NCBI GenBank assembly: GCA_905178155.1
Contig: CAJINV010000006.1
Span: 4,754,921 to 4,818,920 of the forward strand
Origin: Amoebophrya sp. A120
Lineage: Eukaryota > Protista > Dinoflagellata
Reading direction: 5' to 3'
DNA length: 64,000 nt
Shown here: positions 7,881 through 52,800 of the stretch, one piece after another
How positions within the stretch are numbered: position 1 is the stretch's first letter
How the letters are laid out: every line of letters starts with the position of its first letter
Position numbers and translations under genes: made by a program
Notes under the pieces: generated by a model
Told to the model about the DNA's origin: nothing
The model's database searches: none
Seen by the model: the letters and a program-made list of their open reading frames with translations, nothing else

Positions 7881-10800
7881 ATGGCGAATACGTCAACGGC
7901 AGCCCCCGCGGGTCTCCTCCTGCGCTTGTTCATCTCTTCTCTCGCTTTACTGAAGGCGAGTTTGTTCCTGCTCGAGCTTCGTGCAATCGTGGCAACAGAA
8001 GTTGCCCCCGATGCCGAGAGCAACTACATGCAGCAAGGCGCCTCCAAGCCAGACAGTGACCGCTCCGCGCACGCGGATAACGAAGATGTTAACCCCAGAC
8101 AACTCCACCTTCACCCAACTCTCCGGGCATCAGGAGCTGCATCGGATTCGTCATCATCTAGAAGGGCACGACAGCCAGAGCAGGCAGATCAGGAAATTTC
8201 CGCAGGCCGGGACGACGCTCGAGATCATGCAGCAGGTACTGTACCGTCTACGTCTTCTGGCGCAGCTGCTGGGGCTGCTGCTGCTGCTGCACCACAGTTA
8301 TTGCCATCTTCCGACGAGAATCCAGAGGAGCAAGACTCGTCGGCTACTACTTCATCCGACGAAAACGACCACACACTTGTCCTCAACGCACCCGCAAATA
8401 TTCCGCCCGCACTACCGCCACCACCAACAGTACCGTACATGCTCTTTCCCTCCAGCACCACAACAACTAACGCGACCAATAATTTCCGCAACAAGGAACA
8501 GAAACGCTGGAAAAATTTCCGCTTGCAAGTCGAAAACACTTTCGACACAATCCTATCCGATGCAAAAGTATCGTACTCGTACAGATGCAAGACTTGCATT
8601 ACAAATCTTACTCCTAAGATAAATCAGCACTACAAATCTGATTTCTCATGCTGAGGAAATTTGTAATGCATTATTATACGAGTGCGATACTTTTGCAGTT
8701 CATAAATCCTAGAGAACTACAAATCAAAATTCCCCCAGGCGGGCCATGATTTAAAGAAAAAAATCCTCATTCAGCTGCACCGAAACAAGTACAAGATTCT
8801 GCAAACGGGAAGGTATGCATTGCAAAAGCATCGTACTAGTATCAATTGCAATACAAATTTCCTTAGCATGAGAAATGGAATTTGTCATGCGGATTTGCCC
8901 TAATAAAAAGATTTGTAATGCTGGTGCAAGACTTGCCTTTATACGAGTGCGATACTTTTGCAGAGGATAGGAGGCTGATGCTCGCGACGAGGCGGAAATA
9001 CGAGGAGGAACAGGAGGCGGAAGTGCAGTTGTATATGCAAAAAATGATGCAAGCGTTGCAACAGGGCGCGAGTGAAGTACAGAGCGAGCTAGTGGCCGCG
9101 GGCGTGGACGAACATGATCAAGGTGGTCAAAATCATCACGAAGTTCAAGTGCAACTTCAACTTCCAGTATTGCAATTGAACCTCGGGGCGGGCAAAAGAG
9201 CAGGGAAAACGATGATAAACCCGGTAGAACTAGAGGCCGCGTATTCTGCCGGTTTCGCAAATGCTCTCGTTCCCCCGAGCGGCGGCATAATTGCTGCTAG
9301 AGATGAAGTAGACCAAGCTTCTACTGGAGATCCACAATCAGAACAAGTTGATCCACAGCAGCTACAAAAGCTGATGCTGGATCTGTTGCTCAATACACAA
9401 GTCCAGGCGGCGATGGCGAAGGCGTTGTCTGGTTCTGCCGGCGGTCTGCAAGCAGGGGCTGTTGTTCCAGCTGCATCGTCTTCAAACGGAGATACTAGCG
9501 AAGGTGTCGTGCCAGAAGTGCCTGTCCTGCTACCGCAGCCGCAAATCCAGTTTCAGATGCTGCGACCAGGACATCAGGCCGCTGCGTCTGCACCTTTGCC
9601 GAACCAGCTCCAGTTGGAACAAGCGCAAAATGCCGGACTAGAGCTTTTTCACAATAACGCGCCTGGTATTGCGTTTCTGGTCAACACGGATGCGGAGGGG
9701 AAGCCGCAACTGGAGAAACTTAGCGACAGTGATGCTGCGCTCGCACTTGCCGATGTGGCCGTGGGGGCCGCGAGTGAGGGGACCGTGCTGAACCTTCTTC
9801 CACCTGGTGGTGACATAGCTGGGGCTGAGGCCGCATCTTCAGAGGAAGGACCTGCTGAGCCTACCCAATCTTCTGAAACAAAAACGACCGAAGATGGTCT
9901 TGAAAGCAGAGTCGACGACACAGCTTTCTTCACCCGGCCTTCCTCTCTAGATTCAGTGGCAGAGCCGTCAAAGGCACAGGCTGCTTCTTCCGGAGACGAA
10001 AGAACTCCGACCGCGAGCCAGGAGGCCGCACAACTGCAAAGAAATGATGTTGGAGTTGTCCCTGCGGCCAAAAACATCAAGAAACGCAAAAAAAGGCCGA
10101 CCAAAGCTAGAGCCGACGCCGACAACACTTCCCCCGCAACACCGAAATACCAAGGCAAAACGGAGCTGGACCTGGATGAGAAAATCAAACTTTTTCTGGA
10201 GCACGAAAAGATGAAGGATGATTTGAAAAAATCTGTCATGGCAAAGGTGAAAGCAACGATGCAGAAAAGGGTAGAAAAACTGTCGCTCATGGACAGTGCG
10301 GAAGATTTGCAATTGCTTCTTGATGTTGATACTACTTCGGGGAACCAGCATGTTGACAAATTTGCGGAGCAGCAGCACAAATTTTTTCTGGAGCAGCAAC
10401 GGGAGGAGGCAAAGAGAATGGTGCAGCAAAAGGCAGAAATGGAGAACAAGAAGCAGCATACGCAAGAGAAAGTTCTTTTACCACCACCTCCATGGACCAT
10501 GTGCGCGTCCAACTCCATAGCTAATTTGCGATGCAGCGTAAGACGTGTCGAGAGAAAGAGATCTGTCATGCGTTTTTTTAATTTTCAAGGAGTCGGGGTG
10601 GGGTAGATTTCCTGTCAATAACGCACGAAGAGGTAGAACTGGATGCGATGGATGATGACTCAAATGCTGAGGAGGAGAAGGACCAGAAGGATCAGCTTCA
10701 ACAGGATGAACTACCTCCTGGACGATCCGCGGACGTCATGAAAAAAGAAAGTCAAAGTCTCACCATCGACGCCGTAAAAAGCTTAGTCACCGAAAACGAC

Positions 10801-13800
10801 TGGGCTCCGGACATCGAGCTGCAGCTCAACCCCATCCCGATCCAGCTACTCGGGCAAATTGCCAATCAGGTCAGCGTACAGGCACAGATGAAGGCACAGA
10901 AGCAAATGGAACGGGAGAAAGCCGCTGCCGCTGCCGCGCAAAATGAAGACCAAGGTCAAGCTCCTGGAAAGGACGGCGCAGAACAGGCCCAGACTGAAGG
11001 TTACCCGGCGACAGATGGAGCGCAGGCCGTGCAGCCGGAGCCGAAGCAAGGGGAAGGGCGAGATGTGGACGACAGTGGTGCCCCTGCGCCGCGACCTGCT
11101 GCTGCAGCAAGCGCAACTGATGTAGAAACTGGAACTTCTCAGACCGAGATGGGAGGCGAACAGCCGCAACGAGACAACACAGAGGGTGTCGCAAGAGAGC
11201 CAGACGATGCCCCTCCGGAGTCGAACAAGTGTACCGGTGTTGCAGCTGGTCCAGAACCTGCTTCAGTGCAGGACACAGCTCCTTCAACGGAAGATACCGC
11301 CACGACAACCTCCTCGATTTCCAAATCCAAACACCTCTCCCGTGCCATCCGCTTTTTCGTGCATTCGTTTCCCATGCTGGAAAAACCGATGACCGTGTGG
11401 CATCACCGTGCGTCGGAGCGGAAGAACGGCGTGTTTCTATGCGTGGCAAATTATAAAGCATCGTACTAGCAGAGATTTATATAAGCAATGCGACTCGCAT
11501 TGAGTCGCAAACCGGTCGCGGCTTGTCGCATTGCTCGCATTGCCCGCATTGCTCGCAAATCGCGAGGGTCTGCCAGCAGTCAGGCGCGCGGCAATGAAAT
11601 CCCCGCCATGCCGTCGCGATTCGCGAGCTACACGGCAGCGCACTGGCCTGCAAGTACAAAACTGGTTATCCTGCCCTGGGGCTTCTGTAGTGGCGGCTTC
11701 GCTCTCTTACCCAGGAGCGCAGTGTTTAGGTTTTAGATTTTTCTCGGGGAACAAAACACAAACCATGATGGAAGGCTGCCGTCGCGGGGCCCGCGCGAGG
11801 TCTAGCGAAGCAGGTGCAGAAACGACGACGGTGTGGGTGTGTGTTCGATGTTTCGGCGCACTTGCGGCGCATCTTGTTGGATGACCTGTTTTCACGTTCA
11901 CCTGCCGGCACCCACCCCGACCGAGATACTAGGTAGCTTCGTACGTTAGATAGGAGTAGGACTATGGCGCCCAACTAGGATCCGAGCGTGGGCACTCGCA
12001 GACGAACTTGCGAGAACGACTCGCAACACTTGCGACAGATCCGCGTGTTCGCAACTCGCAAGACCTCGGATCGCTGTCGCATTGCTCGCAAATCGCGGCC
12101 GGAAATTCCTTATATAATTGGCTGTACTAGTATGAATTGCATTACAAATTTGCTCAGCATGAGAAAGGGAATTCGTAATGCTGATCGACCTTAGGAAAAA
12201 ACGATTAAGATTTGTATATGCAAAACTCACATTCATACGACAGGAGTACGATACCTTTGCAATGCATAATTTCAGTTTTTCAACAAAAAACACGACACGG
12301 ACGCGAATTTGCGAAACACCTTCCACCCCTACGACCAAGTGAAGTTTGGGGGCCCGCACCAGCCTAATCTGCACGAGGAGGTAGAGTTGAGCAAGTTTTT
12401 GGACACGCTGTTGCAGGTCAGGGATCCAGCAGTCGTGCCGTCACAAGGAGCAGGATCAGGGCAATTGTCGTCCAAATTATCGGCAGACGGACACACAGCA
12501 CCTTCAGAAGGTGGGGGTTCTTCAGGAACGGATTATACCAGAAGTTCCGAAACTGCGACTGAAAAAGACGCAGTTGTACTAGAGGCACCACAGCAATCAG
12601 AGTCGGAACTACCCGGCGCTCTGATCCACGCCCGGCCGACCATTTTCACGATTCTCGGCGTGGACAAAAACGACAATGGCTTGGCCACGGGCTTGACAAA
12701 GTGGGACGGTGACGGGAACAAAAGTGTTTGCCCCTGGGATCTGAACGTCAAAGTGAATCTGCACGATCATCAAAGTCTTGTTGGGCGCCATCAGCATGAC
12801 AAAATCAACAAAAAGCATTACCGAATAGAAATCTCCCCCTGGCGCTGGCCCTATTGCTATCGGGTGGTTAAGATCTACGGGCCGCGGTATCGGTATCGGA
12901 ATGAAACTACTGCGACGGCCTCGCAAGGCGAGAAGGTGGCGGGCATGCCACGAGATGTGGAATCTGTATCGCAGGACGACCAGCACAGGAGCGAACAAGA
13001 GCTGCAAGACGCGGCCCAAGAAGCGGTAGCTGCGGGTAATTTCCCAATACAAACTCCTCTCCGAGTCTCCCTGGAGCTTTTCTACGAGCCGCATGGCACT
13101 GCGGTTCTGGAGGATTTTAAAATGAAAAACGGATTTTTTGCTTCATTTCCGCCCGGTGATTTCGACCAATTTCATCCGTTTATCACAAACAACAACGTGA
13201 AACTGCAGGAGAAGTTTTTCAAAGCGGCGCAAACCATCGGAGGCGTTTTCGAGTACCTGTTTTCTTTGTCCTCATCGACGTCAACGTCGACAAGCAGCAC
13301 CAGTTCCTCAACCACTACTACGCCTGACACGACCTCGGCAGCGGCAGATGTAGTTGCAACGACAACCACCATCACCGCGACCACGACAACTGCGACCAGG
13401 TCTAGTACCACCATCGCCAGTGGTACAACAGCAGGCTCTTCTCCTGCCTCAGAGATCGTTGGGAAAAGTGTGGAACTCCAAGACGAACAACATCCGTTGT
13501 TCGCTAGTGGTCGCAACAGTGTGGCCGCAAATGCTGTTGTGCCTGAAGATGCTCCTGTGCTCACCTCTCCCAACGGCTTAAGCGCAGAAATGAACTGGTA
13601 TACCGCGCAGTTGCGGTTCGACCCGAATGCCCGGACCTTCGTGATTCTGGTGAAAGCTCCGTTTTTCAGCCACTACTTTATCAACAAAGAACTAACCCCC
13701 ATGCCACGGTACGTGTTTCTGGAGAGCGGTGTTGCTGTTGGTGACACGGCTGTATCTAGCAATACAAATTTGCTATCCAATGCGACAGCCGCAACACAAA

Positions 13801-16800: not shown

Positions 16801-19800
16801 GCAGAAAGCGGAAGAATTGATCCAGCAAATCATCGCGGTTTTCCGAACTCCATCAGGCTTCCCGTTTTCCAGAGTGAGAATCGGGTCCGGCTTACCGGTA
16901 ATCGACTCCACCCAGCCCACGATTTTATCCGAAATTGGCACGATGCAGTTGGAACTACGGTATCTTTATCCTGTGCAAAAGTATCGTACTCGTAGTAATC
17001 GCAGTCATGCATTACAAATCTCCATCCCAAGTCAAAACAGCATGACAAACTCCCTTTGTCATGCTGAGCTAATTTGTATTGCAATTACTACTAGTACGAT
17101 ACTTTTGCAGTTCATAATCTTTCCTTCGCGACAAAAAACGCGACGTACGCGAGACTGGCCGACACGATCTCCCACCAACTCCATTTCGACGTTATTCTTG
17201 GTAAAAACGTCCCCACCCCAGAGTTGTCATGCAAATCTGCATGCCAACAAAGTTTGTCATGCGGAGCGCCATGAGAGGCATTTTCTAGTCGTGTGTTGGA
17301 ATTTGTGATGCTATAACCAGCATGATATACTACATCTGTAATGCTGCTGAACTACCTAAACAGGATTGCACTATGAAGACAAACTTGTCATGCCAAACAA
17401 CCAAAGCTGGCTGATGTGTCTAGCAGATTTCCCATGTGGACTCTATTGTGGACGTTTTTACAAATGATAGACGTGTTCCAAGATTTCGGGAAAAACTGGC
17501 AGGACTTCATCATCGGAAGCGCAGGAGGACCAGAGAAAACGGAGGAAAAAACCTACCCGCAGTTGCTACCGACACAGTATACCAACGCGCAGATCATTCC
17601 GATTAAAGTGTTGAAGAACAGTCGGTTTTCGTTAGGCGGCCAGGGAGACAGCTACTTCGAGTACTTGCTGAAACAGTATCTACAGGACGATGAGGATTTG
17701 TTTTCTTTGCATATGTGGGAGGTGATGCTGAAGGGGCTATTAGACAGGAAAAAGGGATTAGTTGTCGGTGTGAAGGGGAAAAACGAAAACGGGATGAAGT
17801 CTGTGGATGAATTACTGCAGGTTGCGACGGGGAGTGATGGACGAGGAGGCGGAGGTACCCTTCAAGCTGCTGCACACGTAGATAATTACCTCGACCCCGA
17901 TGAGGCGTGGGACCGGTTTTTCCCTCCAAGCTCAGGCGGGAACCAGCCTGGAGGTGGCGGGAGAGCGTTTCAAAGCGAAGATGAGGAGCTAGACGCGATG
18001 GATGAAGAGGATGATTTGGGAGAAGACGGAGAATTCAACGGGAACGCAGGCACGGAGCAGGTGATAGAGATTTTAGACGTGAATGACCAACAAGAGGAAG
18101 ATGTGGCTGCCTCAGCCACAACCGGCGACGCGGAAGATGAAAACCAGGCTGCTGACGCGGCTATCAAAGCAGCTGGCACGACGGCGCCAGCTGCAGGAGA
18201 AGAAGCCGGCCGTGGTTCCTCGTCGGCAGTACAGATTGAGATTGCGCCTCCTTCTGCAACCAGCGCAGCAGATCACTACCTCGACAAATCCTACTACATT
18301 ATCGAGCGCGACTTGAAGGGATTGCAGCTGAACCTCATGGCACATTTGACATGTTTCTTCCCCGGAATGCTGGCTTTGCACCTGCATTTGATGACGTCTA
18401 GTACTTCACCAGGGGACATCTACATGAACGGTCCGGCTGTTGGGTTGCCTGCATCCGGGTCAACATCGGAAGGGCAAGAACACGGGGCGACCGTGATAGA
18501 AACTGCTTCCGAAAGAACCGCTGCTGCAGCCTCAGCATCACCGATTGATGGCAGCACAAAGAACTCAACTCAACTTCCACCAACGGCAGAAGAAAATCTT
18601 GCGCCTATATGAATTGCAAAACTAAAACTATCGTACAACTCGTATAAATAAATGCATTACAAATTTCCCCAGCAAGAGAAATGGAGTTTGTCATGCTAAT
18701 TTGCCTTCGCAACAAGATTTGTAATGCAGTACTTGCATTTATACGAGTACGCTACTTTTGCACAGGATAGCCTATCGAACCCAGCACCGACATCCCCTTC
18801 CTGCACCACATCAAGGAATCCACGATGGAAAATTGCTTCAATTTCTACCGTATCCTGTGCAGAAGTATCGTACTCGTATTGCAGTCATGCATTACAAATT
18901 TTTTTCTGAAAGCAAATCCGCATTACAAATTTCATTTCTCATGCTGAGGAAATTTGTAATGCATTTATACGAGTGCGATACTTTTGCAATTCATATACCG
19001 GAATTCCCCGACTGCTCTAGCGCCCGAGGCAGTATTCGTCCCGCCGGACAATTATGTGATAGAAAACATCGAGGAAATCGAGATCCAAGACGACCAGAAG
19101 CGGAAAAAACTGATCCGGACCCGCACGAAAACGTACTTAGACCCAACCGCAATGTACGTGCCACAGGGGCTGTCTTACTCGCTGTTACGTCCCGAGACGG
19201 TGGAGAGCTTGTTCTATTTAGACTACTACCGGGAAGAGAATGAAAAGCTGGTGAGGAAAAGTTTAATGTCTACTTCGAGCACAACTTCAGCTGGGGCTAG
19301 TGGCGCAGAAACTGAAACGCGGTCATTTGCAGATGCTTCGGGCAGTGAGAGCTCCTCTGCTCCTCGTCCTCCCGTGAATCGTGCATCACAAACTACATCG
19401 CAACCTCCTCAACCCGCCACCGTCCAGGAGATTGACCACACGGAAACGCAGCACCGAATTGTCCGGACGAAAAACAAGCCGGGGATGAAGAATCTCCCTG
19501 TAGCTCCAGCGACGAGCACGAGAGCAGCCGGGGAAGAAGATGCTACTGGTGGTGTTCCAAGCACCACAAGTTCTTCCTCGTCGACCTCAGCATCGCAGTC
19601 TGCCCATTCAGACAACAACCAAGCTGAAGACGATGTTCACGAGGAAGACGACTACCTACATCAAACTACTTCCCCCTTCAAGTACAAGCAGATGGGCCAC
19701 TTCATTTGGCAGGGGTTAAAAGACCACGGCTTTATCCCGTACGCGGGGTTCACCACTGTGCCAGACGTGACCCAGTTCCCCAACGTCCCGCGTTCCTGCC

Positions 19801-21323: not shown

Positions 21324-24300
21324 ATGTTGATGTCCCAGGGCGTTGTCCCTTCCCCGCACGGGCACGCGCAGAACCGGGTGGACCAAGAGCACCAGGAGGT
21401 CGACCACCATGGGCACAACGCACAGCATCAAGGCGGCGGACACAGGAACATGTTCGGCCGGGAGTTGCTCGGCAGAGGGCGGTTTCGGGATAAAGGCGAT
21501 GCGGGGTCTCCGAAGAAACCAGAGTCCACACGCGTCCGTCTCCAAAAACGGCAGTCGAAATTGAAGCCGATCATCCCCGCGATCCACCCGCAAAGCCGGA
21601 AGATCGCTTTGTCCGTGTTTCTATGAACTGCAAAAGTATCGTACTCGTATAAATGCATTACAAATTTCCTCAGCATGAGGAATAAAATTTGTAATGCAGA
21701 TTTGCCTTGGAAACAAGATTTGTAATGCAAGACATGCATTAGCATTTGTACGAGTGCGATACTTTTGCACAGGATAGTTTCGACGGTTGTTTTCGATTTT
21801 AAACACAAGATACGGGTCCGTGGAAACGAAGGGGGAAATCCCGGTGTTGCACTTCGTCAGAGCGATGCAGCGGTTCGCGATCGTGATTGGGCAGAAGAAG
21901 CGGAAGAAGGACGCGATCGAGGATGATGACGACACGGCCGGGGTGCCGGAAACGGGCGAAGAAATGCGGGAAAAGGAAAAAACGCAAAAGATACAAGCGG
22001 ACAACTTTGCCAGCTACGACGTGGATGGGAGCGGTATAAATACGATGAAAAAGATTTTACTTTTGATTTCATTGATCATTTTGTCATGCTATTGCTAAAC
22101 ATCCAAAATGAAAATCGCGTGATGTGTACAACATTGGCATCCCGGTTTTTCTTAGATTCCGTTGCGTCTGCTCTATGTCTCAATCGAATCTTCTCTCAAC
22201 AAAAATCAGGTACCGTCGGCTGGTGGGAGTTCGTGTCCGCGTGGAACAACAACAATTACGAGATTCGCCACACCTTCCTCGAGCGCATTTTCCTGACCAT
22301 TGACGACCAGACGGGGTCTCTCATCGGGTACATCATTTCCACCATTTCCCTGTCCATGATCGTGCTCTCTTCCTGCTGCTTCGTGATCGCGACGCTCCCG
22401 TCGTTAACGGTCCGCACGGACCACTGCGAGGCCGTCTGCACGCCCCCGTACTCTAGCCTGCCCCCCACGACGGACCACTACACCCACAACGAGTGGTGCA
22501 ACGAGAACTGCCACCCGGACCAGCCGGACTACTTCTACACGCTGGAAATTTTCTGCGTCATCGTTTTCTCGTTAGAGTATTTCGCAAGGTTGTTCACCTG
22601 CCACGCGGTTCGCACGGAGTTTCTGAATGACGACACGATGATCGACATGATTTTGGGAGATTTGTCGCTCCGAACGAAGACGAAACGGGAGCGAATTATC
22701 CACTTCGTGACCCAGCCGCCAAACATCGTCGATTTGCTCGCGATCGCGCCGTTCTACATAGAAATCATCGCGCAGTCCGACGCGATGAAGGGGAGTGTGA
22801 TCTTGCGGGTGATCCGGTTGATCCGGTTAGTCCGGTTGATGAAAACCGTGAAGTACTTCGAACAACTGCGGATCATGGGCCGGGTTATCAAACGGGCCAT
22901 GCCGGGGCTGTCGGTTCTGTTCTTCTATTTGTGTTTGATCGTCGTCTTCGCGGGCTCGCTGATGTTCCACGCGGAAGCCGGGCACTGGAACAACGAGAAA
23001 CAAGAGTTCCAGCGCTGGAACTGGCAGGCCGGGGAGTACGAGCGGAGCCCGTTTCGGTCGATTCCACAATCGTTTTGGTGGACGGTGGTGACGTTGACGA
23101 CCGTCGGGTACGGCGACATGGTGCCGATGACGCTGCTGGGGCAGGCGTTGGGCGCGGCGACCATTTTTCTCGGGGTTTTGGTCCTGGCGATGCCCATCTC
23201 CGTGTTGTCGTCCAGCTTCTCGGAGACCTGGCGCGAATGGCACGAGGAGAGGAGGTATTGAGAATGTTATTGAGCTTGAAGTTGTGATTTACAAGAAATG
23301 TAGCTCATTTTATATTCGAAAATAAATCCGCAGGCAAGAACAAGCGACATCCGCAACAAGACCAGTCAGTTTATGTTCTTGCTACTTCGTCCTATAGAAG
23401 CATGATTTCCGCATGACAGCCTGATGAATTTTCCCTAAATCCTATAACCCCAAGAACCTCTCAACAACGAACACCAGGCTCTCCGCGGCGCACGAAGCAG
23501 AGGAGCGGGAGGCCATCGAGGCCGCGCTGTCCTTCCGGGACCCGATCCTGCAGTTTCACAAAATCAGCATCGACATCTACGACGAGGACAACCACGGTGA
23601 CCACGATTTCCTGGGCGAGGTCGAGCTAAACCTCGACGACATCGGCACCGGTCCGTGGAAGCAGGAGAAACACGGCGCCGCAAGTGGCCGGTACTGGAAG
23701 TCCATTACCATGGATTTGATGCCGAATGAATACAAGATTGTCGGGACAAAGCGAAAAGTCATTGTTGGGCAGATTGACCTGCAGATTTCCTGGGAGCCGG
23801 TGAAACCCGCGGACAAACTTGACCCCGAACTCCCGTCAGAAGCGATCTCTACCCCGAGCAAGAGACGCGCAGAGCCCTGGGTCTACAACGGGGAAAAATT
23901 GTACCCCGGGACGCTGTTTTTGAAAGTGATCAGGGCAAGAGGGGTGAGAAATGCCGACGCCACGATGTTCCAAACCTTATGCCCAGGATTACATTTATGG
24001 ATGTGTCAGGATCGAAATCGACAAAATCGAAAAATTTGTGATGCATAAAATGTAGGGCACTGGAGGCCTGTATTGGTGAGCAGGCAGATGAGACCGATTG
24101 TAAGCCTGTTTAGGGGTATGCAATGTGCTGCCAGAGTAGCATGACAGCAGCAGGCTCCTTTGCCCAAACAGCATGACAAACTGGATTTGAGTGCTCCCCA
24201 AATGTGTCATGCGCCACTTACAAACTGAGGCGTCAACTGGTATCGATTTTATGCATCACAAATTTTTCGACTTTGTCAATTTCGATCCTGACACCCCCAT

Positions 24301-25376: not shown

Positions 25377-28300
25377 CGAGGATTTGTTTTCTCTTTGAGT
25401 TTTCTCGGTGAGAACAAAGACTCTTCTCTTTGATCCCTAAACTTATTAATTCAGGATACTTATAGCTAGCAAGAGCGATTCACTATCATACAGCTCTAGC
25501 TCAACATCAGTGTGTAGATTTCTTTTTGTGTGTAGACTTAGAAATGACGAAGATGCAGGAGGACATGGCTTGTGTAAAAGGCCTCCCTTGCACTGTGCAA
25601 ATGCTCCTCTCTTTGCCTTTCTACATCACCATCTGTACATTACTAGTAGTTCTTCGCTTTTTACAAGCTTTTGCTTTACCCCACGAATTCGCTTTCTGCG
25701 GTCGTGTGTCTATTGTTTCTCATAGTTTCCATATTTTTTAAACGTACACGACCCCTTCAGTTCCACCAAGTCATACAATAGCCTCAGAATGCTCACATGT
25801 GCTTACCTACATGTTGACCTGCGCATGCGAAGCTCGTTGCTTATTTTCTAACCCCCAAACCCCAGCTTTCGTCACGTAAAACATTCTTTATTTTTTTCTC
25901 GTTTTCGGCACATGGCGTCGCTCTCTGCCCTTACACTCTCAAGAGTAGATCTCAACTACGTCGCGCAAGATTAAGGCGCAATACTGCATTCAGCATGATA
26001 CTAGGTCGGTGAAAATGCATTATTGCCGTGGTCCTCTTAAAAGTGTATTGCGCAGTAGAAGTGTCGTGAGCGCAGTAAATGCGCCCATGAAAGACGAGAA
26101 AAGCCGCACGAACAACATGTCCTCTGATTTCGCGATCTGAACAAGAAGGCGGCCTCTGCAGTTGCAGAGGGCGAGAACTAGTATTTTGATCTCGAAGTAG
26201 AAGATTTGCGAAAACAAGGACAGGATAAAGTACAAAACCAAAAGCTTCACGTGATGAAAAATCTGAATCGACAAAAAGCCCTTGCTCATGAACATTAACA
26301 TGCACTACTCCAGAGTTTTGCCAACGACAAACTTCATCCCGCAAAGATGGAAACCACATCAAAGAGCGCAGCGCTGCATTTTTTTAGTATAGCCCAGCGC
26401 GCCCTTCCTATCATTTTCATTTTCTGTTCCGTATTGTCATTGATGTACTTGCTGCGTGTTTTACATCACTGTGCGAGATTGACCGTATTACCTGGTGGGG
26501 AAGGAGAGCGAGAGGAGGTAAGCGCAAAAAATCGGGTGGAAGGCCCAGATGCTTGATATTATAAACGCGAGCGAGCCGAAATCGAAAACGAGAAAAAACA
26601 CGAGTGAAGGCCCTTACAGGAGGCCCTGAAGATGAGGCCCGCCATAACAGAGATCTTCTCTCGTGTGGCGTGTTGCCGGAAAGTGGTTCTCCTGCGTGGT
26701 GCAACTCTGCCTGTGCGCGAGGAGTGTGAGTAGGCTAATTTGCATTGAAGAGCATTTTGTAGCCCCTCTATTTCGAGTTGGAGAGTTGTGCACCAATAAG
26801 GAGGCGAGGACTCCTCCTTGGCGTCTCGGGTCACAAGAACAGACGCAGAGGATGTGGTAGCCGGATGCTGCGAGAGCAATATCGAGGCTAGCTGGTCCGC
26901 GGCGTCGCCTGTCTTCGTTGAGGCCCACCGGTGTGCATGGGCGCGGCGAAATGGCTCGGGGCCGGGGGCGGTTGGCCGCCTTCAACCTGTGGCCGGCCGA
27001 TTAGTGGCGGAACGGGAGAGCCCCCACTTTGTGGCGAGACAACCGCTGGCGTAGCGAGAAGATGCCAGGTGTTCACGAGCTCCACATCGCCGCAGCGCCG
27101 GCGCCTGTTCCCGAGCGAGCCAGTGGCCCCGCCAGCGTGGGCAGGCTTCCTCTTTGGCGCGCGTTGTTCTCGCCGCCGCCCCTGGCTCCCGCCCCCGCGC
27201 AACCCTAGCCTGCGCGCCCCCGTCCCCCTACGGGGGCAGCAGGTTGGGCCATCGCCTCGCGGGGCCGGCCCGGCCTTCGCTTTATTTTGTTAGTTTTCGG
27301 CGGCGGGCGCGAGATTTTGCCCCTCTGTGCCCCTCTGCTGCCTGTTAAGGCCGTGAAAGTAAGAAGGAGCAGGCACAGGCCCGGGCGAGCCGCCTGCGCA
27401 GGGATGTTGGTTGGGGCCCTTGTATCATCCGCATCCGCCGGGCGCCTTGCTTTCCAATGTCGCGCGCGGCTAGTCGGCTCGGGTGGATAATTGCTGCTCC
27501 CAATGGCAGAGCGTTACGTCGCAAAAAATTAATTATGCGAACAGAATCTGAGTCCATGCCAGGTCCTTGAGCATGTTCGTTCCCGAGCTCTTTGCATTGA
27601 TTCATGGCCATGGGCGTGAGCCATCCATCGATCTGTTCATGGGCCATTCATTATCATCCCGGATGGGGCGACATTGTTCTGATCCGATTCCGATCAGAAT
27701 ATATTTTGAATTTCGTCTGCCCGGCTTCCGGTGATCATTTTTGCTTCTCTTCATCTTCTCTTTCTCATTGGGAGAATTGTCATCATGTTATATCCACATC
27801 TTTATCTTCTCATTTATCTCCTCATGTTTGCTCATCATCCGAAAATAGAAAGATCTCATATTTCCTCGATAATATCTGTATTGTAGGGAAGGATCCATCA
27901 TGAATGAATATCGAAAGATTGCTCGTCTATAAATGATTTGCAAAAAGTGACTCAATTTCAGATTCAAAATAGGATTTACAATTTTTTTTCCGATTATGTA
28001 TCTCATATCATTCCATAGATAGGATCTGGATCGATGCAGAATGAATATGAATACAAATCTAAGAAAAAAATGAAAATTTTTCAAAAAAATGGGGTGAGGT
28101 AATTTATTATATCATGTTGATTAAAAAGATTCTATGAATCTACTCTTTTTGTATTTCCAAAGAAAAACAAGAATTCTCTTTTCTTTCTTTCTGGTCATGT
28201 CTGGGTATGATTTAAATTTGTCATAGGGTCGGTTCGAGATTGTCCTTTTTCTTTTCCTCATCAATTATAATTCCTTCTCTCTCAAAAATAAGATAATGAT

Positions 28301-30594
28301 AAAATTCTAATAATGATATGAAGATAATCCGAATAGAAATTGAAATCATATTTGAGTTTGGTCCCGCCCTTGTAGGGAAGGGAGCCCATGTGTTCGGAGC
28401 ACAAAAGTGCTTGGTCTGTCTTTAGGACCCAGCAGATGCCAGGACCGACTGGCAACGCGCTCAGAGTGAGACAATGTATCCGCCTCAGCTACGCGAGGCC
28501 TGTGGAGTATCTGGCCTAGTTCGGTCCGTGGAACGCTCGCCGCAGCAGGTCTAGCTCGCAGTTAGACCATCGTGCGCCGCCTTCAGCGTCTAAAAACATT
28601 GCCCACGCCCCTGTAGCCTCCCCTGTGGCATGCCCGTCGCATCCGATCGGCTGTGTGTGCAGCCCCGGAGCATACGACAACGGGACGCCAATACAGGGCC
28701 ACGCAGCGAGCGCGCAAAGATGTGCGAGACACGAAGGCCCGCGACTGCCATGCGCGCGCCTCCCTGCCACCTAGCAAGCACCTGAAAGCCATGGGCCCGC
28801 GTCCGAAGGATTGGGTTGCGCCCCCCATCGCTCTTACTTACGCGCGTTGACGCATGCAATGCCCTCGCAGGGCTGGTCCCTGCGCCTTTCCCGTGTGTCC
28901 GCGTCTGCCCTCCGGGTTGCTGCCGTAGAGGTTGCCCTGGCATCGGGGGGCCTGCTCGTAGTAGATTCCCCCCCTCCTCTCTCTATCTGTGGAGAGATGG
29001 AGCAGTAGCATCCGCTAGAATACAGGATGCACGATGAACGCGGCACAAGGCCTGTAGCCCGCCGCCGACGTTGAAAGATCTCAGCCGGCCGATGGCTCGC
29101 AAATTTGCCGCCTAAAAGATTTCCGATTTTTTTCTAATATTGTGGGCCCCACATTGTTCCGGCTTGGCGCCCCCCTTGCTTCTTTTCGTCGTGGCCCCGC
29201 GAGTCCTTGGCCCCAAGGGTTCTGGTGGTAGTCCGGGCAAGGGTTTTTCGCCGATAGTTTTTGCAGGTTTTGGAAACTGGGGCGGTGGGGATTTGTGTTT
29301 TTGGAATTGTTTGGCGAAGATTGCCCGGCCCGGGGTCTGCAGGGCCCGTGGCGCATCGTTTCCCGGGTCGTTCAAGTTTTGCGCCCCTGCGATTTTTGTG
29401 CCCCAGAAGGAAGGCAGCGCGATTGTTTTCCATTTGTCTCGGGCCACATATTAATGGTTGGCCCCGGCCCGCCCGGCCGAGGTTCATGAGGGGCGCAGAA
29501 GTGGGGCGGGGGGGGGTCTAATTTGGGGTCTAATTTCGCTTCTAATTTGTTTCTAATTCCAGCATAGGGAATGTGGAAGGAATTGCAATGAAAAAAATTA
29601 GCCGCGACTTAGCCAGGAATTTAGGCGCGAAGTTAGTCGCCTGCCTTAGCATCGATTTAGGCAAGGAATTAGCCGGAGGCAAGAGGCGCCCCGCCCGTTC
29701 TGTTTCCGGCTAGGCGGTTGTTGTTGATCATTTCGTCGGGCGGCTTCCCGGTTTTTTCTGTGGGTGAATTGCCGCCCCCCATAATCTTGCACATCGCGCC
29801 GCCCCTCCCCTCGGGGCCGCCTCCCTTCTGGGCCATTTTCTCTCTGGATGGGAAGGGCCCAAGGGTGTTCGGTATTTGGCCGCGAAGTTCCTGGCCCCGC
29901 TCGTTTTTGGTGTCCCGCCTCACATGATTTCTGTTCGGTGGCCTTCGGGTTGGGTGTTGTCTTTGGCGGCATTGCCGCCACTTTCTTTTTCTTGTTTTCC
30001 TTCGCAACATTAGAAAAAACATAGCAAGTTTTAAGCCTTGGAGAATGCCCGGGGCCGGCTGCCTGAAAGATCGTGGCAAAATCAATCAACACGACGCTCG
30101 TAGCGAAGACGCATTGATGCGGCCATCAGGAGCATGGATATAGAGCCCGCCGGTGCGTTCTAAGTCTGTCGCCCCCCCAGCAAAGGGCGGCCCAGGCACC
30201 TCCAGGATCCTTGTTCACCTCTTGTGGTGTTCGTCCACATTCGTCATGAATGCAGAGGGTTCCTTCACACCCTTGCTCGCCCATACTACGTTGGGTGGAT
30301 CGCTTTCCGAGAGACAGGGTCAAATTTAGAGCAGCACAAACCTCTCGCAGAACCGCGTGGAGCATGTATGTATGTATATTTGAGTTTGATATCCATCTGA
30401 GAACTCCCTTGAGATAATCTTTTTCTTGTTTCTTTCTGATCATGTCTGTGCTTGATAGATTCAAATAAAAAAAGAATTTCATCGGAGATCCGATCCGAGA
30501 TTATCCAATATTTTTTTTCAATATCCATCATCAAATTCTTTTCTCTTCAATGGAAGAAGATCGAGATATCAATCTCTGGAATTTGAAATTTCTC

Positions 30595-30732
30595 GGTTTA
30601 GGGTTTAGGGTTTTCAAAGGCCATATCTATTTCTACACCAATAGGCTAAAGATATCGATGACAGGACAAGAGAGATCTTCATGAAGGATTTCTTCAGGGC
30701 CTTGAACATTTGACGCCATGCCCAGGCACGAC

Positions 30733-30770
<38 letters not shown>
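30595..30770 (+). mobile_element. 5'-truncated retro-type insertion: telomeric repeats, ~120-bp body, (AAAG)n tail
   Basis: Perfect 10-bp TSD GAAATTTCTC (30585-30594 / 30771-30780); begins GGTTTAGGGTTTAGGGTTTT. Confidence 0.75.
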
Positions 30771-30772
<2 letters not shown>

Positions 30773-30774
30773 AA
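30733..30774 (+). repeat. (AAAG)~10 microsatellite tail
   Basis: Read directly from the sequence. Confidence 0.95.
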
Positions 30775-32690
30775 TTTCTCATAATTTTTTCTTTCTTGTT
30801 TCTTAGAATGATTCTCAGAATAATTTTGAATTCATCTCATCATCTTGATATTCATATCATTCTCGAAGGAAACATTCCAAATTCAAGATTTCTCATTCAT
30901 TTTTTTTTATTCTTCCTCTCCGATCTTCATTCCTACCAACAATTTCGCCAGATTGATTATTCCTATAAAATAAAACACAATCTACAAATGATACATCCGA
31001 ATCTAGATAATGAAAAACACCAAAGAAAACATAATAAGAAAACAGATTCATTGAGGATAATTTGAAGATACAAAGATATTACGAAGATCGACAAGATAAT
31101 GCTAAAAATTTTAACGATTTTCATCCATCCAAGACAATGGAAAAATATCTCTCTCCACCATCCAAAAGAAAAATTTTTCCTCATGAAAATTCTTGATTTT
31201 TTCGAGAGGAAACGATGATGATGATAATTCGATGAAATTCCAGGATTTCCTGGAATCGGAGTCAGGATTTCAATTTCATGAGGTCTAGGAGTGAAATCTT
31301 TCAAAAATTTGGATTTATCATTATTCGAATGAACCTCCAGATAATTCCAATTATCACCTGAAGCTGAACACATCAGATGGATGAGATTAAGATGAATCTT
31401 AGATCGATTGATCCATTCCGAATCCTCTTTCTTCCGATAAAATTCATAGACATGGGTGGTGAAAATGGCGAGCACCTCGAGAACCCCAGTAGTGATTATC
31501 GACATTGGAATTGGAACATGTTCCCGGTCGAGGAGTCAACGAAATCCACAATAGACGAGTGCTAGAAATGCTTCCACCTTGTAGAGGATCGCACCCCGAG
31601 GAGTATTTGTTTTTCTTTATTTTTTCTTCATCAATGACAAAGCCGGGCCCATGGGCCCTCCCCCGTTGGTTGCGTGGGCGCGACCTTCCAGCCCGGCGAG
31701 ACTCATGCCGCCACACGTGCCAACACGCAGACAACCTACCCATGGCGGCGGCGCGATACATAGAGGGCCGCGCGCCACATAACGACGACGGAGGAGCGAG
31801 CCAACCTGGGGGCGGCCTCGCGCGGGGCCAAAAAATAGGTAGCAAGCGCAGGCAGGCTGGCACCCGGCCGCGGGGCGCCGCGCTTGGGTCGGGCGGGGGG
31901 TTGATACGCCACAAGTCGCGGCGCGTAACACACTAGCCGGGCAGTGCCACGCCTGGGCTCCAGAGGGGGGGCCCCGGGGAGACAGCGACCCTGTCCCCAA
32001 GGGGCCGCCGCGAGCGCAGACGCGCATCCAGCTAGCACACACAGAGGCGGCCGCGCCCGCCCGGCGCGCACGCAGCGCCGGCGCAGGTATGCCCAAGGAA
32101 CCAGGCGGGGCCGCAGTTTTGCAGCCAGCGCGTGCCGGCCCGATCGGTTGCGCAGCGTTGCCAACATCTTGGCGCCCCCCCGGTCTCGGGATCGCTCGGC
32201 GTTGGCCACGTTTGCATTTCGCACCTGGATACATCCAGCCACCACCTGGCCGAGTGCGGGGCGCTTCCTGGTTGGTTTGGGGCACTGTCGCGGCCGTCGG
32301 CAATGCGGGAAATTTTGAAGCGTTCGGATGCTTGCGCCTCCAGACTCCTCTCGTTAAAGCGTTGCCACCATCTCCAGGACGAAACATATTTGCAGTGCAT
32401 AGTCTGAATCTGTTGCATTGGATTGTCCACCTCTTGCTGATATTACGATTCGAAGATTATCTATGATTCGCTCATGATTAGCATTGATGTTTCCGAATGT
32501 TTTTACCTGCCTCTCACTCACTCTCCAACTTTTGGTTAGGCGACATACACATATCTGCTGGAAAGCAACGCCGACGCTGTGACTCAATGTAGAACAACAA
32601 CACTGCGGAAGATTGAGCTTGAATTTCGAGGCGGAGTATCTGTTTTTGTTTTTCTTTTTTCCTTCAATGACATATTGTACAGGGTAAGGA

Positions 32691-45781: not shown

Positions 45782-47575
45782 TCACCCTCTCACAGACCTC
45801 CCCCCTCGACCCCCCGTCGGCGACTTCGGTGCAGCCGGTGAAGTTTTGTTCGAGGTAGTTGATGACCCTGCGCCCCGCGTGGATCTGCGGTCATTCCCGG
45901 GGGAAGACGGCGAAGAAGGCTCCACCTCCGGCGCGGCTGTAGTCGTTTCCTCCGTAACTGATTTGTTCCGCACGATGATGACGTGATCGGAGAACAACTT
46001 CGTAAGCTTCGTCACCAAGCCGACCAAAACCACTTTGCACAAAATCCCGATGATAAACTTCCAGACCACAATATCACAGAAAAAAAGTGTTACAGTTACT
46101 TACACACTTGTTGGAGTTTCTGCATCACAAAGTTGCTCGACATGGCAAAGAAAACCTGTGATGCGCAGACTATAAGGGAAAACACGAATGATATGAGGCT
46201 GGCAAGCATTTCCTGCATGACAGAGGTTGTCTGTCTTGCTTGTCTTCGAGCAGAGTGTGTAACTGTGACACTTTTTTCTCAGGATACACAAAATACCCGA
46301 CGCACGCCATCCCGACTGGCGTGAAGACTGCTGAGTACGGGCTTGTATTGTTTGCAAAAGCATCACAGTCGTCATCTCATGGTTGCAGGAACACTGCATG
46401 ACAGATCAAGATCTAGTGAGTCATGAGTAACCTGAACCAGCATCACAAGCTGAGTTTTTGCCTGTGGTTCAAGTTATGCGTTATTCAATTCAATTTGTCA
46501 TGCACAAGCACATGTACCAGCACCTATAGACTCGTGCTGCAATGCTTTTGCAATGCGTAATTTGTAGTGCAGTATACCGCAACTTGGTTGTAGTACCCCG
46601 AAAAAACTGCTATTGCCGCATCAACCGCAGTTTTTTGTTCTCGTCCCAACTCTGTCAAGTGCAAAAATGTTCGGGCCTGGATAAGTGCAGGTGTTTGTCA
46701 TGCGATTTGTACGTGTTGGCCCGGAAGGTCTCGTTTGGCTTGCAATTGCAAGCGGCAGCATCACAAGTTTTGCGGTTGTTTCAATCTCGATGTCGATTCT
46801 CACTGCCCAATCCGCATGACAAATCTCTTCTTTGGACAACTTTTTCTTATCACGCATCACAATTTTTTCTTTTATATTTATCTGAGCAATCGATCTATAA
46901 TAAACGGGCATGACAAGATTACATCTTATTTGCCTTACTGACCCACACCCAGACATATTTGCCATGCATAAACTCCGCCAACGCGACACAAACCTTCACC
47001 TCAAAACCTCTTGCCGACTCCGTTTTCACTCGTTATGGGATTCTCAGTTGTTACATTCTCAACTGCTGTTCGATGAATTTGACATGCAAAATTCCCATAC
47101 GTCCAAGTCGCCAGAAGATTATGGTGATTTGCATGACACATTCTCGAAGGGCTAAACAGCATCCAAGTCTGTTGCGAATTTGTGATGCGAGACTCGCAAC
47201 AAGCTTGCCCCTTTCCATATTGCTCTTCTTGCATCACAGATTCGTGGTGTAAGAGTTGAGAATGTGACGTTTGAGAGCGCCATACTGGTGCTGCGCATCG
47301 TCTGAAGTAGAAGTCGGCAAAGTAGTAGATCAGACCTATTCTGTGCAAAAGTATCGCACAACTCGTAGTAATCGCAGTCAAGCATTACAAATCTCCTTCT
47401 CAACCTAAATCCGCATTACAAATTCCATTCTTCATGCTGAGGGATTTTGTCATGCGATTTCTACTAGTACGGTACTTTTGCAGTCCATAAGGCCGAAAAG
47501 TAGTCCATTCAGAACCAGCGATAGCGCTATGGCCACCTGCCGGACGGCGCTGAAAAGCCGCACTGTGGACACCAT
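45782..47575 (-). CDS. Hypothetical membrane protein, 205 aa, 6 exons, 2 hydrophobic segments
   Basis: Exons 47575-47490, 47331-47285, 47028-46971, 46647-46560, 46340-46287, 46066-45782 total 618 nt, open from ATG to TGA. Confidence 0.8.
46072..46286. mobile_element. Introner, singleton
   Basis: TIR aaaaaagtgt(t/c)acagtta; perfect repeat CACAA. Confidence 0.9.
46346..46559. mobile_element. Introner, decayed
   Basis: TATtgtttgcAAAAgcat...atgcTTTTgcaatgcGTA; repeats GCTTG/ATTTG. Confidence 0.78.
46653..46970. mobile_element. Introner, family C (left end TGT)
   Basis: Perfect repeat AACTC. Confidence 0.88.
47034..47284. mobile_element. Introner, family D
   Basis: TATgg..ttctca...acattctcaac TIR; repeats CTCGT/CTGGT. 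Confidence 0.86.
47337..47489. mobile_element. Introner, family A (reverse orientation)
   Basis: Repeats AGACC/AGGCC. Confidence 0.88.
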
Positions 47576-49882: not shown

Positions 49883-52800
49883 TCAACTCTTCACAACATT
49901 TTTCCGCCCCACCGCCACTGCACCGACCTTTTGTCGCATGTCCTTCTTTCTCGATTCCGCCAAATTTTCGACCGCTGATTCCGGGATTTTCAAGTCTTGC
50001 GTCAAAAATTCGTAGCAATCCACGTCGTAAAAACCCTGTAGGAGGATCTCAAAGGGAACCGTCGGCGCGTCTTTTGCCATGATCACTTGCCCGCTCGTGG
50101 ACTTCAGCACGTGCTGTTTCAAATGCGCCAGCACCTTGTCGAGATCCAGGTAATATGCATTGCAAATGTGTCTGGCTCTGGCACCTAGCATGCTAGTTTG
50201 TGTGAAAAGGAGGCACACTTCAAGATGACGCAGCCACGCATGACAAGTTTCTGGGCTCCTGGCTGTGTGTTTGTTCCCTTTCCGCATGACAAACTGTATT
50301 TTTGCATGACAGCCATAACTATTTTTTCCTGGTACGCATTACAAATTCAACCCTTTGCTCGCTTCTTATGGCGCGCGCATTACAAACTTAAGAGTCAGAT
50401 GAGGCAAGCATAACAAACTCAGATTCTTCTAGACCCAAACATATTTTTTGCATCCGATAGGTAATACTTCGACAGGCCCTGGATGAGGGTGCAATTGTGG
50501 TTCATCCGCTTCTCCGTGCGGACCTGAATCTTCGGGAGCTTTCCGTTTTTGTAGGCGATTTGAAGTTGGTCCCTCGCCGAGGTTTGCACTGGATATGGGA
50601 ATGAAAAGATTTTTCGAAAAGGCTACATCAACAAGGTAGCACTACTTCCACACGAGTTTGTATTGATGTGCAACTCACATGTAAGACTACCGCTACTCAG
50701 CTTATGATTACTTACTCGTGACGAAAAGGGTGCACTACGACTCTTGATTTTTCAGTACAGTGTAAGAGACATCAAAACTAGTAAATTCTGCCATGAGCAA
50801 TCCTTTCCAAACTCTTTCTCATTCCATATCAGCGGCATCGTCACAATGCGGTGGTGCTTCTCCCCGGAAACGCAGTTCTCCCAGAGTAATCGCGAGAAGG
50901 ATTCGAACGTCAGTGAAGAGACATCCGTATGCATCGCAAATAGGTCTCGGCCTGGAAGAGTCCGAGTTTGTCATGCTAAATCTTGTCGACACAAAAATCT
51001 GTATTGCGTGACCAGGAAAAGTCATATACTTTTGGTTTCCGGAAGGTGGCATTTCTCATCCGGATTCGGCATTGCGAAGCATTCTGGAAACTTGTGATGC
51101 TAGACGCGACATTCCAGACCTTTTGGGTCATGCAAAAGCTGCATGACAGAGCTTGCATCTTCCAGACCCAGACACATTTGCAGTTGATAAACTGGCGCGG
51201 GCGGCTGTCCTCGGGGGCTAGTAGATTCTCGTTTCTGCGGCTCAAATTTTTGTTTCCCTGGAAGCGCGGCTGGCCCTCGTCCTTTCATGGCTTTCTGATC
51301 GCCCCCTGCTTCGAGTGTCGGAAATGCGTCCAAATCCTCCTCGTCAAAGACGAAATCCTGTTGCGCCACAAGCTTAGCTGCGTTTGATTGAAGATAATTG
51401 CCCGAGGTGGACCCACCACCGACGTTGCTGCTTGTCGCACCGCTTTGCTTCTTAGTATTGCTCGCAGCCATGTAGCCGGAGACGGAGTCTCGTAATCGTG
51501 GCACTATGCACTGCAAAAGCATCGCACTAGTATAAATTGCATTACAAATTTTGGCAAGAAGAGAAGTAGAATTTGTATATGCTGTTTCACCTTAGGAAAA
51601 AGATTTCTCATGCATATCTGCAATTATTACGAGTACGATACTTTTGCACAGGATAGGCACCGTGCTCAGGTTCAGCATTTTCTTGCTCGTGGAGAGGTTC
51701 TTTTGTTCGCAAAACCGCTTTATCAAATGTAAAAATGTCTGGGTCTGGAAGAGTTCATGTTTGTCATGCTTTTCTGACATGACTCTTTAAATCTGTCACG
51801 CACGTTACCCAAGAGCTCCGCTTTTCTGTGATGCAGAAGCGCAGTTTGTCATGCAAAATAGGCAACACCTAGGAGCTCAGAAACTTATCATGCTGAGCCA
51901 GCATCTGTAGCCTCATCATGAGATGACGCCATCCAGCATCACAAGTTTCCAGACCCAGACATTTTTACTTTTGATACGCTTCAAGATTTGCTGGAAGTCC
52001 GACTTTTGCTTCACATAGTGGCTTGTGTTGCTGGAGGTGCTCGGGGTAGTCGTGTTTTTCAAAATGAGATCCTCTTCTTCCCGCCCGCAGGCGGTTGCAA
52101 TTTCGGCAATGACGAACTCGCCAACACTGCTCGGAACACGAAACACCTCTTCGTACTGAATGAATTGACACACCCCGAGTTTGCTATTCGTGACGGCGAG
52201 ACTGGCAAACAGTTGGCCGGGTGACAGGTTTCTCAGGTTTGTAGGTGCGGTAGAAGACGATGAGTTCGACGCTCCAGGGAATAAAGCACCACCTGGCACT
52301 TCGTCCGACGAAAGCTTTTCGTGCAACGCGTGATCCTTCACCGCAGGGTGCTTGAAGTTGAACTTCAGTATGGCGTTCTCAAGCGTTACATTCTCAACTG
52401 TAGTTACATGGATTTGCAATGCAAGAACAGCAATAGTAAAAGTGGCAATATTGCAGCTTTCGCATCACAGATTTGCCACATTTTATCATGCTGTTTAGCC
52501 ATTCGAAAATTTGTCATGCTACGGACCTTGATCAAGTGGAGGCTGGTGGCAACTTTGCATGGCAAATCCGTGTAACAGTTGAGAATGTAACAATTGAGAA
52601 TGCCATACTCAGAGCCTTCGTCTTGTCCTTGTTAAAGCTGATCAGATTTTCGTACTCCGCATCTAATTTCTCAAAAAAAGGCTTGAGTTTTTTCCCGGAG
52701 CTCTTTTTCACGTCAACGCTTGTGTTGTTCGGGCGGTTTGGGCGGAGGAAGTTGGCGTAGAAGGTGTTCTATCAAATGCAAATATGTCGTCTGGGTCTGG

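Follow-up and report, generated by a model that had tools for sequence, protein, structure and literature searches.

Context-specific C-to-T hypermutation of mobile DNA has been described in fungi, where it is called repeat-induced point mutation (RIP), and for the AID/APOBEC enzymes of vertebrates. To our knowledge RIP is confined to fungi, and we know of no context-specific C-to-T hypermutation of mobile DNA in alveolates. A literature search found no non-fungal case of RIP and no report of RIP for Amoebophrya. Fungal RIP (RID and DIM-2 in Neurospora) turns DNA rich in transposable elements (TEs) into AT-rich islands by C>T and G>A changes on both strands, possibly in strand-coordinated patches; it acts on C with a 3′ A (CpA), enriches TpA, and also mutates sequence in or beside the affected regions. 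Duplication of a sequence sets it off, it requires a DNA methyltransferase of the RID type, and it takes place before meiosis. AID targets WRC/WRCY hotspots in transcribed immunoglobulin loci, and APOBEC3 edits C to U in retroelements at insertion, in TC or CC context and with a sense-strand G>A bias, leaving hypermutated copies. Methylation-driven decay at CpG and CHG sites, in animals and plants, is a slow C>T process limited to silenced TE-rich DNA, and in basidiomycetes silenced transposons are hypermutated at TCG (PMC3318451). Here we describe two AT-rich blocks, at 27.65-28.36 kb and 30.40-31.6 kb of the final 64 kb (C6:4754921-4818920, hereafter the window) of the 4,818,920-nt contig C6 in the 115.5-Mb assembly of the parasitic syndinean dinoflagellate Amoebophrya sp. 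A120. Because young repeats inside a block gain C-to-T changes and copies elsewhere do not, the data suggest that mutation is targeted locally, by a process of which there is no earlier description in this lineage. Our reading, to which we give a probability of roughly 55%, is that a regional process converts C to T after purines in silent blocks of nested TEs, through deamination of cytosine or methylcytosine.

R and Y denote purine and pyrimidine neighbours, and R-C-K a C between a purine and G or T; the R and Y classes are safe because transitions leave them unchanged. RC or GY context holds 50.9% of C and G across the window. A preliminary description had counted by hand 22 of 22 C after a pyrimidine and 15 of 15 G before a purine at 30481-30594, and 7 of 8 and 16 of 16, respectively, at 31201-31260. 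These counts are exact, and the absence of all 37 bases of the former interval from RC/GY has a chance of about 4e-12 at the window-wide frequency. The longest run of C and G outside RC/GY comprises 43 consecutive bases (30454-30595), is the sole such stretch in the 64 kb, and obeys the C rule and the G rule within a single element. Every 114-nt window that holds at least 25 C/G but no RC/GY falls at 30452-30482. The index (AC+GT+GC)/(TC+GA+CC+GG), for which the random value is 0.75, was scanned across the window. It was low only in the two AT-rich blocks, with 0.33-0.37 in the left one (27.5-28.5 kb) and 0.20-0.21 in the right one (30.5-31.5 kb), and about 0.75 in the rest of the window, other AT-rich windows included; the block flanks are GC-rich and have a normal index. 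Counts on the plus strand of the blocks are 232 versus 49 for C and 191 versus 48 for G, so that the deficit is symmetric overall. Assembly of a public short-read run gave contigs of single-copy depth that agree with the blocks throughout (0 differences), and no RNA reads mapped to the blocks. Since the published A120 assembly also consists of Illumina scaffolds (PMC7789003), the deficit is no Nanopore base-calling artefact, and a sequencing or assembly artefact is ruled out.

Blocks of this kind numbered 33 at the loci retrieved through retroposon tails; the loci of this study were chosen through such tails and TE families, not randomly. They are 0.3-1.9 kb long, with a GC content of 28-40% and an index of 0.18-0.34. 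No block was found inside 30 intact elements encoding reverse transcriptase (RT), of which the GC content is 42-72% and the index about 0.4-1.2 in 300-nt windows. Pooled symmetrised odds ratios (rho) in the blocks are depleted for AC/GT (0.47), GC (0.47), TA (0.48) and AG/CT (0.82) and raised for GA/TC (1.69), AT (1.20) and CC/GG (1.20), while CA/TG stands at 1.08. CG is neutral (1.01), in keeping with the earlier claim that CpG survives. Enrichment of AT with depletion of AC, GT and GC, and enrichment of GA with depletion of AG, exclude an artefact of purine/pyrimidine tracts or microsatellites. The C fraction of pyrimidines in the 33 blocks is 0.256 in R_R, 0.143 in R_Y, 0.558 in Y_R and 0.326 in Y_Y context, against 0.571, 0.485, 0.537 and 0.420 in the background. 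The AT-richness of the blocks comes entirely from C that is missing after purines and, to a slight extent, before pyrimidines, with zero loss in Y-C-R. Among trinucleotides, RCT reaches 0.25, RCG 0.33-0.36 and RCA/RCC 0.54-0.90 of expectation, and YCG 1.4-1.8. Conversion of RC to RT in silico in ordinary window DNA reproduced the directions of the shifts in AC, GC, AG, AT, CC and GA and kept CG and CA near 1, as in the blocks. The simulation over-predicted TA and under-predicted AA; the TA excess agrees with the low rate at R-C-A.

Alignments of repeat copies show that this is a mutational pattern and not just a matter of composition. Substitution direction was set by majority rule, with few copies per comparison. 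In a 21-copy alignment of a family of short non-LTR retroposons with a (GAAA)n tail, C>T was found in 32 of 189 RC cells versus 35 of 483 YC cells (p = 3e-4), which upholds the comparison of tail-motif copies in the preliminary description. Two of its copies, L064c and W30 (30400-30575 of the window), have 6 of 9 family RC sites converted, whereas most other copies have 0-3. In pairs of long GC-rich retroelements at least 97.8% identical, C and T interchange at 50 of 4848 sites in R context versus 13 of 5146 in Y context (odds ratio 4.1, p = 7e-7). By 3′ base, the R-context changes are 22/1003 before T, 15/1530 before G, 9/1363 before C and 4/952 before A, and the contexts rank R_Y > R_R > Y_Y > Y_R. 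When polarised with an outgroup, 15 of 17 R-context changes run from C or G to A or T (S>W) and 2 of 17 run the other way (W>S). Three data sets agree on the target preference: a purine at -1 and, at +1, the order T≥G>C>A. The process acts on both DNA strands and is concentrated in retroelement-rich AT-rich blocks, as had been proposed, and the excess of RC>RT over YC>YT that the preliminary description called for in TE alignments is present in the tailed family, the long retroelements and a further repeat, X.

Repeat X provides the clearest evidence that location matters. It is young and GC-rich and lies within the AT-rich block on the plus strand (left part 28362-29080, right part with the 3′ end 30064-30385). 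A genome search with 26.5-33 kb turned up at least 10 further copies, each contiguous and of 96-98% identity. A second repeat, Y (29081-30066, plus strand, about 985 bp, 85-92% identical to at least 11 copies), is nested in X. Private changes in the block-resident copy of X comprise 14 RC>RT, 1 YC>YT and 2 transversions; the totals for seven siblings of equal youth in ordinary flanks are 2, 3 and 13 (Fisher's test, 5e-5). Matched for age by transversions (2 versus a sibling mean of 1.9), the private RC>RT changes stand at 14 versus a mean of 0.3, an excess of about 50-fold. This age-matched comparison disfavours a uniform clock and favours regional targeting. The hits fall in GCT (six), GCG (four), ACG (four) and GCA (one), with none in RCC. 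All 7 in the left part are on the plus strand; those in the right part are at 30158, 30225, 30247 and 30251 (plus) and at 30283, 30352 and 30364 (minus), the last three being confirmed by a short-read contig of single-copy depth. Multi-copy short-read contigs differ from the window by ten T>C differences that agree with the RC>RT hits. The Y copy in the window has 7 private RC>RT changes versus 3 YC>YT. The sole other Y copy with block-like flanks (L083; flank GC 0.26-0.29, index 0.15-0.17) has 15 private RC>RT changes, against 7 in the remaining nine Y copies together. Position inside a block, and not copy number or repetition, predicts the damage.

These results are best explained if the AT-rich blocks are old, transcriptionally silent nests of mobile-element debris, holding tandem or nested copies of (GAAA)n-tailed non-LTR retroposons together with unrecognisable DNA. 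In such nests, C after a purine would become T on either strand, most strongly at R-C-G and R-C-T and most weakly at R-C-A. The action would be regional, so that any resident DNA, recent GC-rich inserts included, would drift towards an AT-rich, RC-free state and the same repeats outside such domains would be spared. The data show the context and direction of the changes, their occurrence on both strands, their dependence on location and their independence of copy number. Chemically, they may be the work of an enzyme that deaminates cytosine or 5-methylcytosine in a domain resembling heterochromatin. Of the two enzyme classes that the preliminary description proposed to look for, C5-DNA-methyltransferases were found, with 12 PF00145 matches at about six genome loci, all over the cut-off. 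A clear AID/APOBEC gene was not: among AID-like Pfam families APOBEC_N was the one searched, and its best match scored 21.4 bits against a cut-off of 25 bits. The presence of methyltransferase loci, together with the lack of a clear AID/APOBEC match, would put a methylation-linked route slightly ahead, with an unrecognised single-strand DNA deaminase nearly as likely. Generic cytidine-deaminase-fold domains (dCMP_cyt_deam_1) occur at six to seven genome loci. The APOBEC_N match below the cut-off (C3:1217868-1218197, minus strand) lies inside a 1035-aa open frame and is not among the dCMP_cyt_deam_1 matches; the matched part is possibly a divergent deaminase domain. No papers on cytosine methylation in Amoebophrya were found in the literature search, and the words "methylation" and "deaminase" are absent from the Amoebophrya genome paper (PMC7789003). 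The process may serve in genome defence, as the preliminary description had suggested, or may be a by-product of silencing. More specifically, an enzyme-driven, domain-targeted R-C-K hypermutation system might inactivate any insert in marked TE-nest domains, with position or chromatin domain and not homology as the trigger; this stronger form we put forward tentatively, and hold it to be possible but doubtful.

Several observations weigh against regional targeting. The location effect rests on three block-embedded copies with small numbers. One of them, L083, is less specific than X (about 22 R-context versus about 10 Y-context S>W changes, from an alignment read by hand) and rich in transversions, and may simply be older. 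The 21 hits in the X/Y insert of the window fall into 4 same-strand runs (seven plus, three minus, eight plus, three minus; exact p about 0.003, one of several statistics calculated by hand), which would suggest strand coordination; L083 shows none, with about 12 plus and 10 minus hits in 12 runs among 22 (read by hand). Outside the conserved 3′ module, the tailed family is already RC-poor in its majority sequence, so part of the RC bias was inherited and not acquired in place. No GC-rich progenitor of the block DNA was found by alignment, by BLAST on purine/pyrimidine-collapsed sequence or by pattern search. Furthermore, the C:T odds in the blocks for Y_R, Y_Y, R_R and R_Y (1.26:0.48:0.34:0.17) mirror the rates in young pairs (0.17%:0.32%:0.77%:1.31%) with the same context order, and RC transitions per transversion come to about 3.3-3.5 whether counted in the tailed family of the blocks or in the long retroelements outside blocks.

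The last two points would follow from a uniform neutral spectrum of RC>RT (R-C-K) change combined with age, by which the blocks would be the oldest unconstrained DNA at equilibrium, without any targeting, and their sharp edges would come from younger GC-rich insertions. Most block DNA is indeed too diverged for relatives to be found, and the block edges coincide with the insertion of X and with a segment bounded by direct repeats. This explanation is nevertheless unlikely. It does not account for the excess in the X copy at matched transversion age, nor for the normal index of other AT-rich windows. Retroelement lineages 85-95% identical show no context bias, and an introner family with 6% transversions shows the reverse bias, with 9 RC>RT among 339 versus 28 YC>YT among 220. 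Selection on the introner hairpin may contribute to this reversal. The opposite bias of this introner family agrees with the suggestion of the preliminary description that introners are spared.

Fungal-type RIP, by which homology-recognised duplicates are hypermutated in bursts as a dedicated defence, is quite improbable. It would fit the C>T and G>A dominance in the affected repeats (the tailed family, X, Y, L083 and the long retroelement pairs all show an RC>RT excess), which yields TE-rich AT-rich islands resembling RIP-affected regions, as well as the heavy conversion of L064c and W30, the same-strand runs of hits in the window, and the presence of DNA methyltransferase genes, the class that includes fungal RID. 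The preliminary description had called the pattern RIP-like. The repeat-induced part of that claim is not supported. X and Y are both multi-copy repeats of about 1 kb, yet in ordinary flanks their copies (seven young siblings of X, nine siblings of Y) carry essentially no hits, so duplication does not trigger the process. A young tail insert 98% identical to another locus also remains unconverted inside the block. Moreover, most block DNA has no recognisable GC-rich progenitor. Patterns built from conserved 35-mers, with every C/G allowed as T/A, matched only unconverted copies of three GC-rich families (Y and two long retroelement families), and no converted copies existed at the segments tested. 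C is hit next to a 5′ purine (R-C-K) instead of in CpA, and TpA, which RIP would enrich, falls to 0.48; the process here also appears gradual and dependent on position, and its host is a dinoflagellate. Because the blocks show neither a loss of CpG nor a rise in TpA, both canonical RIP and CpG decay are ruled out. The locus resembles methylation-driven TE decay in the confinement of C>T change to TE-rich silent DNA and in the presence of methyltransferase genes, but it differs in that CpG is not lost, YCG is enriched and the 5′ purine is decisive.

We give similarly little credence to intrinsic composition, by which the blocks would have been RC-poor on arrival, as AT-rich and GA/TC-rich retroposons, decayed (GAAA)n tails or foreign AT-rich DNA. 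The RC-poor majority sequence of the tailed family with its tandem copies in blocks, the strong enrichment of GA/TC, the missing GC-rich progenitors and a related tailed family whose differences show no RC bias would all agree with it. Opposed to it are the private, polarised RC>RT changes in the GC-rich X and Y copies inside blocks. The RC sites that vary in the tailed family are those of its conserved module. C in Y_R context stands at background level while C in R context is lost, a mutational footprint that an AT-rich origin would not leave, and purine/pyrimidine tracts would not yield enriched AT with depleted AC, GT and GC. Conversion of RT-encoding elements into blocks was rejected, because transition-tolerant local alignment against the 30 RT loci was no better than against reversed controls.

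Regional deamination after purines would resemble AID in its target, with a purine at -1, T favoured at +1, regional targeting and action on both strands. The likeness in target preference is limited to -1: G is also favoured at +1 and C disfavoured, the preference of AID for W at -2 is not evident (7 of 12 hits, read by hand), and the changes are heritable and occur in silent protist DNA, whereas AID acts in transcribed loci; no AID/APOBEC family gene exceeded the cut-off in the APOBEC_N search. As with APOBEC3, retroelements are left as hypermutated copies, but the context is a 5′ purine in place of TC/CC, both strands are hit, and flanking block DNA that was not retrotransposed is affected too. 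If a domain-targeted system operates in Amoebophrya, it would be functionally analogous to fungal RIP or to the targeting of AID, and the first such system beyond fungi and vertebrates. A position-dependent process of RC>RT change would add a new mutational signature and possibly a new route of transposon neutralisation. The Amoebophrya genome is reported to contain few repeats and to carry introner elements (PMC7789003), and such a process would help to explain a compact, repeat-poor genome in the presence of active retroelements and introners. RC sites in AT-rich blocks would then offer a handle on DNA modification or a deaminase in the unusual chromatin of dinoflagellates. If the pattern reflects merely a neutral spectrum and age, it would still be a useful, previously unreported case of neighbour-dependent mutation in this lineage.

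The two AT-rich blocks of the window are the halves of a single old block, about 2.1 kb long, which X carrying Y has divided; these nested GC-rich insertions account for the knife-sharp inner edges of the halves. The left half (27650-28361, GC about 35%, index about 0.27) ends exactly at the start of X and contains a copy of the tailed retroposon, W28 (28177-28340, minus strand), which matches L008 and about 20 other copies at 76%. On the minus strand, the sequence of its 3′ module is CATACCCAGACATGACCAG(AAAG)n, and the tail motif is at 28183. In one public run, whose type we guessed to be RNA, a contig joins 29071 to 30064, the form of X without Y. The first part of the right half (30400-30584, minus strand) contains the heavily converted W30, which has the same orientation as W28 and in which the run of 43 C/G falls. 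The unconverted young retro-insertion follows at 30585-30780 on the plus strand, with the canonical tail ...CATGCCCAGGCACGACAAG(AAAG)n; it is 98% identical to L002 over 30629-30774 and keeps its RC sites, 14 of its 31 C following a purine. Two telomere-type TTTAGGG units stand at its 5′ junction (30596-30612). The second part of the right half (30781-31600) is AT-rich and RC-poor, with single-copy depth, 0 differences and no RNA reads, and searches of the genome by DNA, transition-tolerant pattern and protein gave no relatives; a transition-tolerant pattern from 31226-31260 matched itself only. Between blocks, purine/pyrimidine-collapsed BLAST detected only short shared tails of at most about 270 nt. 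The sharp right edge is formed by a GC-rich segment of about 1 kb (31600-32672), bounded by 40-nt direct repeats at 31600-31639 and 32633-32672 that are 83% alike in a repeat search. This segment is probably another insertion, possibly with long terminal or target repeats.

The 180-aa open reading frame (ORF) at 30963-31505 on the minus strand had been suggested to be a remnant of a mutated TE gene, but nothing marks it as such. It has no Pfam family over the cut-off, no paralogue in the genome and no RNA reads, and its Atlas recognition is low, with no Atlas match. The 190-codon open frame exceeds those in Markov-1 simulations (P about 0.001). The ORF is not a likely gene and is probably spurious.

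The conserved 3′ module of the tailed family ends in ...CATGCCCAGACATGACAAG(AAAG)n and also holds TTTTAGGGCC. The 45-nt module with (GAAA)n trails many unrelated upstream sequences (L005, L010, L011, L015 and L019/L020, with the tail at about 1530 of each), which suggests tail-mediated retroposition of cellular transcripts. Some of the module-tailed loci carry open frames of normal GC content, and that of L010 is lysine-rich and HMG-box-like by eye. Two Y copies, L074 (C7:3375171-3377152) and L075 (C5:1390682-1392663), have equal substitution counts and mirror-image flank compositions, and may represent a recent inverted segmental duplication or assembly redundancy. L083 contains a 24-nt internal tandem duplication at 760-810 (alignment A2, columns 263-310); both units already carry the RC>RT changes, which therefore predate it. 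The introner family is palindromic, about 150 nt long and rich in GTAC/TGCA motifs, with at least 12 copies in the window that are 73-84% alike (606-752, 4840-4989, 6465-6625, 8553-8705, 8814-8972, 12126-12261, 16967-17117, 18624-18770, 18851-18995, 21622-21777, 47335-47490 and 51505-51657). Because contig C6 ends with the window, the TE nest may be subterminal on its chromosome.

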